64,000 nucleotides of DNA, taken from contig NC_000964.3 of assembly GCF_000009045.1 (NCBI RefSeq), positions 62,001 to 126,000 on the forward strand, given 5' to 3'. How positions within the stretch are numbered: position 1 is the first letter of the stretch; each line of letters begins with the position of its first letter. The stretch is from Bacillus subtilis subsp. subtilis str. 168 (lineage in GTDB: Bacteria; Bacillota; Bacilli; Bacillales; Bacillaceae). Position numbers and translations under genes: made by a program. The notes beneath the pieces are model-generated. The model did not search any database, was not told where the DNA came from, and was given only the letters and a program-made list of their open reading frames with translations. Below are positions 8,538 to 14,347 of the stretch, in pieces.

Positions 8538-11021
8538 ATGGAAAAAGCAGAAAGAAGAGTGAACGGGCCAATGGCGGGACAAGCTTTGGAAAAACTCCAA
8601 TCGTTTTTTAACAGGGGCACGAAGCTGGTGACTCATCATTTGCATTCACTGTTTTTCTATAAAGGATTCATTTATGTTGTCATCGGATTTTTGCTTGGAC
8701 GGGCTTTCATATTATCCGAGGTGCTTCCTTTCGCACTTCCTTTCTTTGGAGCGATGCTTCTTATCAGAAGAGACAAAGCGTTTTATGCGGTTTTGGCTGT
8801 GCTTGCAGGTGCGCTGACCATATCTCCAAAGCACTCATTGCTCATACTGGCGGCATTGCTGGCATTCTTCGTATTTTCTAAAGTGGCTGCCTTCATTACC
8901 GACGATCGTGTTAAAGCGCTCCCGATTGTCGTGTTCTTCTCCATGGCTGCAGCAAGAGCCGGGTTTGTTTATGCCCAAAATGGCGTATTTACAACCTATG
9001 ATTATGTAATGGCTATCGTTGAGGCTGGACTATCGTTTATCTTAACACTGATTTTCCTTCAGAGCCTTCCGATTTTTACTGTGAAAAAAGTGAAACAATC
9101 ATTAAAAATAGAGGAAATCATTTGCTTTATGATTCTTATTGCCTCTGTTTTAACGGGGCTGGCTGGCTTGTCCTACCAAGGGATGCAGGCAGAACATATA
9201 TTGGCTCGTTATGTTGTGTTGAGTTTTTCCTTTATTGGCGGAGCAAGCATCGGCTGTACGGTTGGGGTTGTGACCGGCCTGATTCTTGGCTTGGCGAATA
9301 TCGGAAACCTATATCAAATGAGTCTGCTTGCTTTTTCCGGTTTATTGGGCGGTTTGCTGAAGGAAGGGAAAAAAGCGGGTGCAGCAATTGGTTTGATCGT
9401 TGGATCACTTCTTATATCTTTATATGGTGAAGGCTCTGCCGGTCTGATGACAACGCTCTATGAGTCATTAATCGCAGTCTGCCTGTTTTTGCTCACACCT
9501 CAATCTATTACGAGGAAAGTGGCGAGATATATTCCGGGAACTGTCGAGCATCTTCAAGAGCAACAGCAATACGCTAGAAAAATCCGTGATGTCACTGCTC
9601 AGAAGGTAGACCAATTCTCCAATGTATTTCACGCGCTGTCTGAAAGCTTTGCAACCTTTTATCAAGCATCAGACGAACAGACAGATGACAGCGAAGTTGA
9701 TCTGTTCTTAAGCAAAATCACGGAGCATTCCTGCCAGACGTGCTACAAGAAAAACAGGTGCTGGGTACAGAACTTTGATAAAACATATGACTTAATGAAA
9801 CAAGTTATGCTTGAAACAGAGGAAAAAGAATATGCATCAAACCGAAGGCTGAAAAAAGAGTTTCAACAGTATTGTTCTAAATCCAAGCAGGTTGAAGAGC
9901 TGATTGAGGATGAGCTCGCACATCATCATGCCCATTTGACACTCAAGAAAAAAGTCCAAGACAGCAGGCGCCTTGTTGCTGAACAGCTTTTAGGCGTTTC
10001 TGAGGTTATGGCCGACTTTTCTCGGGAAATAAAAAGAGAGCGAGAACAACACTTTCTGCAGGAAGAGCAAATCATAGAAGCGCTTCAGCATTTCGGAATT
10101 GAGATTCAGCATGTCGAGATCTATAGTCTTGAACAAGGAAATATCGATATTGAAATGACCATTCCGTTCAGCGGACATGGAGAAAGTGAAAAAATCATTG
10201 CTCCTATGCTTTCTGACATTCTGGAGGAACAAATTCTTGTGAAAGCCGAACAGCACTCTCCGCATCCGAATGGATACAGCCATGTCGCCTTTGGATCAAC
10301 AAAATCATACAGGGTGTCCACGGGAGCTGCTCACGCTGCGAAGGGCGGCGGCCTTGTCTCCGGTGACAGCTACAGCATGATGGAGCTTGGAGCCAGAAAA
10401 TATGCTGCAGCAATCAGTGACGGAATGGGCAATGGCGCAAGAGCGCACTTTGAAAGCAATGAAACGATCAAGCTTCTTGAAAAAATCCTTGAATCGGGCA
10501 TTGATGAAAAAATAGCAATTAAAACGATCAACAGCATACTGTCTCTAAGGACAACTGACGAAATATATTCCACGCTTGACCTATCTATTATCGATCTTCA
10601 AGATGCCAGCTGTAAATTTTTGAAGGTTGGATCGACGCCCAGCTTTATCAAACGGGGTGACCAGGTCATGAAAGTTCAAGCGAGCAATCTGCCAATCGGT
10701 ATTATTAATGAATTCGATGTGGAGGTTGTGAGTGAACAGCTGAAAGCGGGTGACCTCTTAATTATGATGAGTGATGGCATTTTTGAGGGGCCTAAGCATG
10801 TGGAAAATCACGACTTATGGATGAAGCGTAAAATGAAAGGGTTGAAAACAAATGACCCGCAGGAGATTGCCGATTTGCTTATGGAAGAAGTCATCCGCAC
10901 AAGATCCGGCCAAATTGAGGACGATATGACTGTTGTTGTCGTCCGGATTGATCACAATACACCGAAGTGGGCATCCATTCCTGTTCCGGCAATCTTTCAA
11001 AACAAACAAGAAATTTCATAA
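8538..11021 (+). CDS. spoIIE: Stage II sporulation protein E, membrane PP2C-type serine phosphatase, 827 aa
   Basis: N-terminal multi-TM region; C-terminal PP2C motifs SGDSY, ISDGMGNG, MMSDGI and EDDMTVVV; ATG 8538 after GAGAGG. Confidence 0.97.
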   Translation: MEKAERRVNGPMAGQALEKLQSFFNRGTKLVTHHLHSLFFYKGFIYVVIGFLLGRAFILSEVLPFALPFFGAMLLIRRDKAFYAVLAVLAGALTISPKHSLLILAALLAFFVFSKVAAFITDDRVKALPIVVFFSMAAARAGFVYAQNGVFTTYDYVMAIVEAGLSFILTLIFLQSLPIFTVKKVKQSLKIEEIICFMILIASVLTGLAGLSYQGMQAEHILARYVVLSFSFIGGASIGCTVGVVTGLILGLANIGNLYQMSLLAFSGLLGGLLKEGKKAGAAIGLIVGSLLISLYGEGSAGLMTTLYESLIAVCLFLLTPQSITRKVARYIPGTVEHLQEQQQYARKIRDVTAQKVDQFSNVFHALSESFATFYQASDEQTDDSEVDLFLSKITEHSCQTCYKKNRCWVQNFDKTYDLMKQVMLETEEKEYASNRRLKKEFQQYCSKSKQVEELIEDELAHHHAHLTLKKKVQDSRRLVAEQLLGVSEVMADFSREIKREREQHFLQEEQIIEALQHFGIEIQHVEIYSLEQGNIDIEMTIPFSGHGESEKIIAPMLSDILEEQILVKAEQHSPHPNGYSHVAFGSTKSYRVSTGAAHAAKGGGLVSGDSYSMMELGARKYAAAISDGMGNGARAHFESNETIKLLEKILESGIDEKIAIKTINSILSLRTTDEIYSTLDLSIIDLQDASCKFLKVGSTPSFIKRGDQVMKVQASNLPIGIINEFDVEVVSEQLKAGDLLIMMSDGIFEGPKHVENHDLWMKRKMKGLKTNDPQEIADLLMEEVIRTRSGQIEDDMTVVVVRIDHNTPKWASIPVPAIFQNKQEIS

Positions 11022-11028
11022 CGCTTCC

Positions 11029-11058
11029 GTATAAATCAAATTTCTTCTGGCGAAGATG
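11029..11058 (+). promoter_or_regulatory. Putative sigma-F promoter for yabS-yabT
   Basis: GTATA-N15-GGCGAAGAT matches GYATA-N15-GGnnAnAnT. Confidence 0.65.
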
Positions 11059-11105
11059 GGAATATATGAATCTGAGAATCCTCGTATTCTCCAGGAGGAA
11101 TGAAT

Positions 11106-11843
11106 GTGAACAACGGACATTTAAATCAAATTTTGCTGATAACGGATGGCTGCTCAAACCATGGGGAAGACCCGCTTGCAATGGCTGCTTTTGCTAAAGA
11201 GCAGGGGATTACGGTAAATGTCATTGGTATAATGGAAGAAAATCAAATTGACCCTGAGGCAATGAAGGAAGTCGAAGGGATTGCACTTGCCGGAGGAGGC
11301 GTGCACCAAGTCGTTTATGCATCTCAGCTTTCACAAACTGTTCAAATGGTAACAAAGAAAGCGATGACGCAAACCTTACAAGGTGTAGTCAATCAAGAAC
11401 TGAAACAGATTCTCGGAAAGAATGTGGAAATGGAAGAGCTTTCTCCGGAAAAACGCGGCGAAGTCATGGAAGTGGTAGACGAGCTTGGAGAAACGGTGCA
11501 TCTTCAGGTTTTGGTTCTTGTTGATACAAGTGCAAGTATGGCGCCAAAGCTTCCAACAGTAAAAGAGGCGCTGATTGATTTGTCTGTAAGCCTCAATTCC
11601 CGAATTGGGAATAACGAATTTGCGATGTGTATATTTCCCGGGAAAAAACAAGAGGTCGAGCTTGTGCTGAACTGGACACCGAAGCTGCAATCTCTTTCCA
11701 CACTCTTTGCAAAGCTTTCGACAGGCGGCATCACGCCGACAGGTCCGGCGATTCGTGAAGCGACACTGCAGTTTGAAAAAATACGCTCAAGAAGGGGCAT
11801 GCTGGCAGATGATGAACGACGCTTTGACGAGTTTGGCATGTAG
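11106..11843 (+). CDS. yabS: vWA (von Willebrand A) domain protein YabS, 245 aa, GTG start
   Basis: MIDAS elements LLITDG, VDTSAS and GGITPT; RBS AGGAGG 7 nt upstream of GTG 11106. Confidence 0.9.
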   Translation: MNNGHLNQILLITDGCSNHGEDPLAMAAFAKEQGITVNVIGIMEENQIDPEAMKEVEGIALAGGGVHQVVYASQLSQTVQMVTKKAMTQTLQGVVNQELKQILGKNVEMEELSPEKRGEVMEVVDELGETVHLQVLVLVDTSASMAPKLPTVKEALIDLSVSLNSRIGNNEFAMCIFPGKKQEVELVLNWTPKLQSLSTLFAKLSTGGITPTGPAIREATLQFEKIRSRRGMLADDERRFDEFGM

Positions 11844-12825
11844 CCTCAAGCCGGGTACGACAATCAAAGGCAAGTGGAATGGAAACACTTATACATTGCG
11901 TAAACAGCTTGGTAAAGGGGCCAATGGAATTGTGTATTTGGCAGAAACATCAGATGGACATGTTGCCTTAAAGGTGAGTGATGACAGCCTGTCTATTACT
12001 TCTGAAGTGAATGTCTTGAAATCTTTCTCAAAGGCCCAGTCCGTTACGATGGGGCCTTCTTTTTTTGATACGGATGATGCCTATATTCCCAGTGCCAATA
12101 CGAAAGTTTCATTTTATGCAATGGAATACATAAAAGGGCCGCTGCTTTTGAAGTATGTCAGTGATAAAGGAGCAGAGTGGATACCGGTATTAATGATTCA
12201 GCTGTTATCCAGCTTATCGGTGCTTCACCAGCAAGGATGGATATTCGGCGATCTTAAACCTGATAATCTGATCGTAACTGGTCCGCCCGCAAGGATCCGC
12301 TGCATTGATGTGGGCGGCACGACAAAGGAAGGCCGGGCGATAAAAGAGTATACGGAGTTTTATGACAGAGGCTATTGGGGGTATGGAACAAGAAAGGCAG
12401 AGCCATCCTATGATCTGTTCGCAGTTGCCATGATTATGATCAACAGTGTGCATAAAAAAGAATTTAAGAAAACGAACCAGCCCAAAGAACAGCTTAGGTC
12501 TCTCATCGAAGGAAACCCGCTGCTTCAAAAGTATAAAAAAGCGCTTTTTTCAGCCTTGAACGGAGATTATCAATCCGCAGATGAAATGAAAAAGGATATG
12601 CTAGACGCGGGGCAAAAAGCAGCACAAAGAAAACAGCCTATAAAAGCATCACCGCAGCCTGCCACACGACAAAGACAGCAAAAACCGCGCCAAGGAAAAA
12701 TAACGAAGACGCGATATACCCCAAAACAGAAACCGGCTAAGTCGGGGGGGTTATTTGAAACAACGCTTATCGTGATCAGTGTTTTAGCGCTTTATTTCGC
12801 CTATATTATCTTTTTCTTAATCTGA
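11809..12825 (+). CDS. yabT: Hanks-type Ser/Thr protein kinase YabT, 338 aa
   Basis: LGKGANGIVY glycine loop, VALK, GDLKPDN and DVG; basic linker; C-terminal TM helix. Overlaps the yabS end. Confidence 0.94.
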   Translation: MMNDALTSLACSLKPGTTIKGKWNGNTYTLRKQLGKGANGIVYLAETSDGHVALKVSDDSLSITSEVNVLKSFSKAQSVTMGPSFFDTDDAYIPSANTKVSFYAMEYIKGPLLLKYVSDKGAEWIPVLMIQLLSSLSVLHQQGWIFGDLKPDNLIVTGPPARIRCIDVGGTTKEGRAIKEYTEFYDRGYWGYGTRKAEPSYDLFAVAMIMINSVHKKEFKKTNQPKEQLRSLIEGNPLLQKYKKALFSALNGDYQSADEMKKDMLDAGQKAAQRKQPIKASPQPATRQRQQKPRQGKITKTRYTPKQKPAKSGGLFETTLIVISVLALYFAYIIFFLI

Positions 12826-12928
12826 ATGGTGCAAACTGCAGAGCCTATGCTTCTTCTTTGCTTGGAGGGGTTGAAAGTGTTAGGATATGAATATCTTTAA
12901 AATACCTGCTCATTGTGAGGAGGACATT

Positions 12929-14347
12929 GTGAAAAGTGTCAAAGATTTTTTAAACAAACACAATCTTACGTTAAAAGGGGCGACAATCATTGTAGGCGTT
13001 TCCGGCGGTCCGGACTCAATGGCTCTTCTTCACGCGTTGCATACGTTATGCGGCCGTTCAGCGAATGTTATTGCAGCTCACGTTGACCATCGGTTCAGAG
13101 GTGCGGAATCCGAGGAGGACATGCGTTTTGTCCAAGCTTATTGTAAAGCTGAACAGCTCGTGTGCGAAACGGCTCAAATCAATGTAACCGCATATGCACA
13201 GGAAAAAGGACTCAATAAGCAGGCTGCAGCACGCGATTGCCGCTACCAGTTTTTTGAGGAAATCATGTCGAAGCACCAAGCGGACTATCTGGCTCTTGCG
13301 CATCATGGTGATGACCAGGTTGAAACAATGCTTATGAAACTGGCTAAGGGTACGCTTGGAACGGGACTTGCGGGAATGCAGCCGGTTAGACGTTTTGGGA
13401 CAGGGCGGATCATCAGGCCGTTCTTAACCATTACAAAGGAAGAGATCCTTCACTATTGCCATGAAAACGGCTTGAGCTACCGGACGGATGAAAGCAACGC
13501 CAAAGATGACTACACAAGAAACAGATTCAGAAAAACAGTGCTCCCGTTTTTGAAGCAGGAATCTCCGGATGTGCATAAAAGGTTTCAGAAAGTGAGTGAA
13601 GCACTGACGGAAGATGAGCAATTCTTACAGTCATTAACGAAAGATGAAATGAATAAAGTAATCACAAGCCAGTCTAATACATCAGTTGAAATCAATTCCT
13701 CTCAATTGCTTGCCCTCCCGATGCCTTTACAAAGAAGAGGAGTTCAACTAATATTAAACTATCTTTATGAAAACGTTCCATCATCCTTTTCAGCCCATCA
13801 CATTCAGCAGTTTCTCGATTGGGCGGAAAATGGCGGTCCTTCAGGAGTACTGGACTTTCCGAAAGGGCTGAAGGTGGTCAAATCATATCAGACATGTTTG
13901 TTTACATTTGAACAATGGCAGTGCAAAAATGTTCCCTTTGAATACCAAATTAGCGGAGCTGCTGATGAAACGGCAGTGCTCCCTAATGGATATCTGATAG
14001 AGGCAAGGCATTATGCGGACTCGCCTGAAGAACATGGGAATGCTGTTTTTATCACAAGTGAAAAAAAGGTGCGATTTCCCTTAACAATCCGGACGAGAAA
14101 AGCTGGAGACCGGATCAAACTAAAAGGGATGAACGGCTCAAAAAAGGTAAAGGATATATTTATTGATAAGAAATTGCCTCTCCAAGAAAGAGACAACTGG
14201 CCGATTGTGACGGACGCAAGCGGTGAAATTATCTGGATACCTGGCTTGAAAAAATCAATTTTTGAAGATCTTGTGATTCCAAACAGCGACCGCATTGTAT
14301 TACAATATAGACAGCATGAAAAGTGTAGGGGGCAAGCAAAATCATGA
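12929..14347 (+). CDS. tilS: tRNA(Ile)-lysidine synthase, 472 aa, GTG start
   Basis: SGGPDS PP-loop, [14 protein letters not shown] and TRNRFR; RBS GAGGAGG. Confidence 0.96.

Follow-up and report, generated by a model that had tools for sequence, protein, structure and literature searches.

The canonical von Willebrand A (vWA) domain presents its sequence elements in the order DxSxS, Thr loop and TDG. In YabS, which is encoded directly downstream of spoIIE in Bacillus subtilis subsp. subtilis str. 168, the elements run TDG, DxSxS and Thr. YabS is thus excluded from the canonical family by element order and is a circularly permuted variant of it. The locus lies within a stretch of 64,000 nucleotides (NC_000964.3, positions 62,001 to 126,000 of the forward strand), which we refer to as the window and which carries spoIIE, yabS, yabT, tilS, hprT and ftsH in that order. 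The question it raises is whether YabS is one domain, rearranged but with an intact metal-ion-dependent adhesion site (MIDAS), or two half-domains that complete such a site between chains, and what role a protein of this kind might have next to a phosphatase and a kinase. Taken as a whole, the evidence is best explained by YabS being a single permuted vWA domain with its site formed in cis, derived by tandem duplication and acting as a putative partner of YabT, a reading to which we give a probability of about 0.85.

To place the motifs correctly, the start of the gene has to be settled. The GTG at 11106 is separated by 7 nt from the GGAGG at 11094–11098. An in-frame ATG is also present at 11100, two codons upstream of the GTG, where it touches the Shine–Dalgarno sequence directly. 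The GTG is preferred as the start codon because of its better spacing, and therefore the 245-residue numbering adopted in the sequence-only reading holds. Translation of 11106–11843 places all of the motifs which that reading had quoted at the residues it gave for them, these being LLITDG (Asp14), GITVNVIGI (34–42), VLVLVDTSASM (Asp140, Ser142 and Ser144), FAMCIF (172–177) and GGITPT (Thr210). The features of the locus and of the protein are collected in Table 1.

Table 1. Positions within the window of yabS, its flanking genes and the elements of the encoded protein
Feature	Position	Strand	Basis
spoIIE (PP2C phosphatase, PF07228), directly 5' of yabS	8538..11021	+	Pfam
yabS Shine–Dalgarno sequence, AGGAGGA	11093..11099	+	The sequence itself
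yabS coding sequence	11106..11843	+	GTG start, 245 aa, TAG stop
Residues 5–71, strand–helix–strand–helix–strand, second half of canonical vWA (β4 to β6)	11118..11318	+	Pfam, hhalign, 4rck_B, model
Asp14 codon, TDG aspartate of MIDAS	11145..11147	+	Alignment to canonical TDG; invariance
Residues 72–130, family-specific helical hairpin	11319..11495	+	Predicted helices; no canonical profile counterpart
Residues 132–243, first half of canonical vWA (β1, α1, β2, β3, α2, Thr loop, α3)	11499..11834	+	Pfam, hhalign, 4rck_B
Asp140-Thr-Ser142-Ala-Ser144, DxSxS of MIDAS	11523..11537	+	In register with canonical DxSxS; invariance
Thr210 codon, MIDAS threonine in GG-I-T-P-T	11733..11735	+	Alignment to canonical Gly-Thr; invariance
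yabT (Hanks-type Ser/Thr kinase, PF00069, 338 aa)	11809..12825	+	Pfam

Sequence profiles provide the clearest view of the permutation. The Pfam VWA family (PF00092) matches YabS with 39 bits against a curated cut-off of 23.8, and this match is split into two stretches. The two halves were also scanned separately, as the sequence-only reading had proposed, which returned the halves of the profile in swapped order: residues 7–78 of YabS align with VWA positions 105–167 and residues 135–228 with positions 2–97. The C-terminal half additionally aligns with positions 1–93 of the VWA_2 profile (PF13519). In NCBIfam the matches to YabS are partial and far below threshold; the C-terminal half is matched by a cobaltochelatase family and the N-terminal half by BatA.

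The same arrangement is recovered with hhalign when an alignment of the YabS family (25 sequences, with identity to the query as low as 29%) is compared with one of canonical vWA domains (22 sequences, from Bacillota genomes). Against a single copy of the canonical profile, YabS residues 132–233 match positions 1–109 with an E-value of 3.4e-14, and residues 7–74 match positions 107–192 with an E-value of 1.3e-11. Doubling the vWA profile head to tail gives a single in-order match that runs over the junction (YabS 7–233 to positions 107–316, E 6e-23), and re-cutting the YabS alignment at residue 108 gives a single in-order match to vWA positions 1–192 (E 3.8e-25). A collinear alignment over the whole protein, which had been named in advance as the result that would speak against a permutation, is absent, order being restored only by re-cutting or doubling. 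As judged from these profile alignments, the out-of-order vWA match far exceeds chance. An in-order vWA reading of YabS was considered as well and is ruled out by the out-of-order matches.

The re-cut alignment brings the DxSxS motif, the Gly-Thr loop, LLTDG, the IG motif of β5 and the GGG turn into register with canonical vWA domains, so that the full set of MIDAS motifs (DxSxS, the Thr and the TDG Asp) is accounted for in YabS. Asp14, Asp140, Ser142, Ser144 and Thr210 are invariant in 133/133 distinct homologues, as are the flanking residues Thr13, Gly15, Pro211 and Thr212 in the same set, and this invariance argues for a functional site. The claim of a permuted single domain with an intact MIDAS motif is thus borne out by the profile tests and by the conservation of these residues. 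With the chain closing upon itself, the five MIDAS residues should form one predicted Mg/Mn site in cis; that they would lie near one another is predicted from the alignments together with the canonical topology.

What this domain might do is best approached from its neighbourhood. Among the 301 genomes of a sample of the phylum, yabS was found in 14, with spoIIE upstream at 14/14 loci and the order spoIIE–yabS–yabT–tilS kept at all 13 of the 13 loci that reach as far as yabT. In the window the first 35 nt of yabT are also the last 35 nt of yabS (11809–11843), and elsewhere the yabT start overlaps or abuts the yabS stop, with 1–4 nt overlaps of the ATGA type at the distant loci L008, L009, L011 and L012, which suggests a conserved translational coupling of the two genes. 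No site resembling an intrinsic terminator was found from the end of spoIIE up to tilS (window positions 10800–13000), which fits transcription reading through from spoIIE into yabS–yabT. According to a transcriptome study, spoIIE and yabST are transcribed together, and what yabS does is poorly understood (PMC5857382).

Two genomes that have spoIIE without yabS carry tilS directly after spoIIE, with no yabT at the site (L128, G069:C44:11500-15800; L129, G209:C1:24500-29000). Because both genes are missing at these two loci, yabS–yabT behaves as one two-gene module that is gained or lost together, and it may be an insertion that some endospore-formers carry between these two genes, spoIIE and tilS. 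SpoIIE_N is found in 244/301 genomes of the same sample, as against 14/301 for YabS, and for this reason SpoIIE is not regarded as a dedicated partner of YabS. A search of genome contigs for related loci with yabS returned close Bacillaceae relatives only and so added nothing to its known distribution. Records named 'Pseudomonas sp. ISL-84' and 'Chryseobacterium sp. ISL-80' (L113 and L122) contain a yabS locus of Bacillaceae type with ~70% identity, and both assemblies probably carry the wrong label or contain contaminating sequence.

From this setting we propose that YabS would be a cytoplasmic protein-binding partner or switch of YabT, the kinase with which it is co-translated, and would depend on metal. 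A predicted complex of YabT(1-275), YabS and Mg scored 0.67, compared with 0.51 for the control, and weighs neither way. The alternative that survives best keeps the fold and changes the role, casting YabS as phospho-substrate or metal sensor in a switch like that of TerY-P, where YabT would phosphorylate it and SpoIIE dephosphorylate it. TerY-P triads (Anantharaman et al. 2012, via PMC10542128) combine a vWA protein with a PP2C phosphatase and a Ser/Thr kinase and are predicted to form metal-sensing phosphorylation switches, with the kinases carrying nucleic-acid-binding modules. The yabS locus shares with them a vWA gene flanked by genes for a PP2C phosphatase and a Hanks kinase, adjoining one another as spoIIE (PF07228), yabS and yabT (PF00069) in an order kept at 13 loci, and the MIDAS motif of YabS contains invariant Ser and Thr residues. 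YabT, described as a DNA-activated kinase localised to the septum (PMC3708118, PMC6333020), also resembles the TerY-P kinases in its dependence on nucleic-acid binding, DNA binding being required for its activation (PMC3708118).

Against such a switch stands the much wider occurrence of SpoIIE, which together with the spoIIE–tilS arrangement of the two genomes without yabS does not fit a dedicated three-gene module. Furthermore, YabT has only the Pkinase domain in Pfam, whereas TerY-P kinases have a C-terminal zinc ribbon or OB-fold fusion; the literature on YabT describes a basic DNA-binding stretch next to a membrane helix rather than a zinc ribbon or an OB fold. The vWA domain of YabS is permuted, which sets it apart from the TerY-P system, and among PADLOC models there was no match for YabS nor for the PP2C part of SpoIIE, so that no specific link to defence-type TerY-P emerges. 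A role as substrate or sensor of this kind is therefore rather unlikely, and a binding partner or switch of YabT is the reading we carry forward.

The next question is whether the halves of YabS meet within one chain or between two. AlphaFold2, run with the 25-sequence family alignment, gives a confident single-domain monomer model (pLDDT 84.6, pTM 0.83), the tail past about residue 230 having low confidence. On the N-terminal side the model has strand 5–13, a helix, strand 35–43, a helix, strand 64–71 and helix 72–103; on the C-terminal side it has helix 114–130, strand 132–140, helix 143–164, strands 170–177 and 185–191, a short helix and helix 212–243. A PDB sequence search identified 3RAG as a full-length homologue (E 4e-47, 42% identity over residues 5–220). 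This is the structural genomics entry of Aaci_0196 from another species, Alicyclobacillus acidocaldarius, which was released in 2011 as an 'uncharacterized protein' with two chains and has TDG, DTSASM and TPTGPA in common with YabS. Foldseek fits the model onto single chains of 3RAG with TM 0.85/0.90 and an rmsd of 1.9 Å, and VIA-align does so over 224–228 residues with Z 31.4–31.7 and an rmsd of 1.9–2.1 Å. One chain of the crystal is therefore as compact as the monomer model, with both halves packed within it.

These superpositions bear directly on the suggestion, also made by the sequence-only reading, that two half-domains of YabS complete the MIDAS site in trans through a domain-swapped dimer or a head-to-tail polymer. 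The helical linker of residues 72–130 is in principle long enough to act as a hinge, and 3RAG does contain two chains, but a swapped chain could not fit a single 3RAG chain in this way, and in the crystal of this 42%-identical homologue the halves pack inside one chain. For 3RAG the trans or domain-swap reading is largely refuted, and for YabS, where the structure prediction that had been called for yielded a single domain superposing on one chain, we consider it very improbable.

Canonical vWA domains match the YabS model one half at a time, so that superposition is reached half by half. With VIA-align, residues 14–117 of 4rck_B from Vibrio fischeri align with residues 131–226 of the model (Z 8.0, rmsd 1.7 Å, 24% identity) and residues 120–217 with residues 5–88 (Z 7.0, rmsd 2.2 Å, 22% identity), the two alignments combined covering the canonical domain in swapped order. 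Z-scores of 7–8 are middling, since unrelated Rossmann-like folds aligned in order reach similar values, and the case for structural homology to vWA domains consequently leans on the low rmsd, the 22–24% identity and the sequence profiles. The N-terminal halves of 4rck_B, ArnB, Ku80, collagen VI, ANTXR2 and SpaC all align in VIA-align with about residues 127–231 of the model. Canonical prokaryotic vWA proteins (4rck_B, ArnB 8s05_B and the BatA and ChlD types) have the same secondary-structure elements and the same set of MIDAS motifs as YabS, but their halves stand in the opposite order and they are without its hairpin of about 55 residues. From these half-by-half matches we infer the sheet order and the simultaneous fit of both YabS halves on one vWA domain.

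Least credible of all is a reading of YabS as an ordinary Rossmann-like domain of the SDR or HAD kind, with its elements in order and its vWA motifs present by chance. The model does match SDR and HAD folds in order and at full length in VIA-align (Z 6–8, those of Z 7–8 spanning 125–150 residues), and residues 11–129 resemble YjeF_N in Pfam, although at 22.7 bits (E 1e-4) this match stays below the cut-off of 24.9. The SDR and HAD matches, however, have an rmsd of ~4 Å and 6–14% identity, which is the range of a common arrangement, neither family appears among the Pfam and NCBIfam matches, and the vWA profiles are matched by each half at E 1e-11 to 1e-14, all MIDAS motifs being in register. 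Going by known topologies, a doubly wound 3-2-1-4-5-6 sheet that is cut between strands 3 and 4 gives 3-2-1-4-5-6 anew. As the cut keeps the strand order, an in-order Rossmann-like resemblance of YabS is expected, and the similarity to YjeF_N and to SDR and HAD folds is probably a generic one made by the permutation itself.

With YabS taken as a single permuted vWA domain, its chain can be followed in terms of the ancestral fold. It would begin at β4, which ends in the TDG Asp14, and continue through β5, β6 and the ancestral last helix. In vWA domains the N- and C-termini of this ancestral fold lie next to each other, and in YabS they would be linked by the hairpin, which in the model consists of a long helix (72–103) that extends the ancestral last helix, a loop and a second helix (114–130). 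The hhalign alignments contain no counterpart to this hairpin in the canonical vWA profile; within the homologue alignment its residues Thr83, Leu99, Pro114, Arg117 and Leu127 are nearly invariant. After it, β1 with DxSxS, α1, β2, β3, the Thr210 loop and α3 would close the chain. The alignments and the canonical topology indicate that the new termini probably correspond to the former α3–β4 connection, and by analogy with that topology this connection would lie on the face opposite the MIDAS site.

The likeliest origin of this arrangement would be a tandem duplication of a vWA domain, after which both outer halves were lost. After 3RAG, the best Foldseek match of the model is PTMP1, a mussel protein with tandem vWA domains (4CN8, 4CN9), which aligns over 225 columns with E 7e-5 at an rmsd of 17 Å and a TM of 0.24. 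This alignment apparently spans the two vWA domains of PTMP1, and the rmsd of 17 Å fits a match of YabS that runs over from one domain into another, separate one. Read in this way, the alignment would parallel the test with the doubled profile, and PTMP1 would serve as a model for the origin of YabS by duplication and truncation, with the difference that the matched halves apparently belong to two separate domains in PTMP1 and to one domain in YabS. Natural permutation of an α/β fold with all active-site motifs kept is also seen in cpRAS and the YlqF/YawG GTPases (PMC2430557), although these belong to another superfamily than YabS and the vWA domain features in that paper merely as a neighbouring domain.

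The permutation also has a bearing on how the site could be regulated. In canonical vWA and I-domains a free C-terminal helix moves in a piston-like manner and sets the affinity of the MIDAS site. Permutation makes this normally free, allosteric last helix an internal element of YabS, where it would be 32 residues long and continuous with the conserved hairpin. The hairpin might then be linked mechanically to the binding of ligand or metal at the MIDAS site. YabS would in that case sense metal or phosphorylation and regulate the DNA-activated kinase YabT allosterically at the sporulation septum, as a switch in the manner of TerY-P that development has taken over, a doubtful extension to which we attach less weight than to the substrate or sensor role considered above.

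A search of the literature library found in it no publications on 3RAG or Aaci_0196, on the YabS fold or on a permuted vWA domain, and the matches on permutation that it returned (cpRAS and an eLife paper) concern other permuted domains. The earlier impression that the permutation was undescribed thus stands as far as the papers in that library are concerned; the fold itself has been in the PDB since the release of 3RAG, and the novelty of the finding is tempered to that extent.

Few metal-dependent modules for protein interaction are as widespread as vWA domains with a MIDAS site, and YabS indicates that their fold tolerates a cut between α3 and β4 with all of the metal-ligand residues kept. 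The permutation explains why tools that expect the elements in order annotate YabS partially or report two out-of-order VWA matches. For a conserved sporulation gene that is co-translated with YabT, it offers a structural handle and a set of positions for point mutants, namely D14, D140/S142/S144 and T210.
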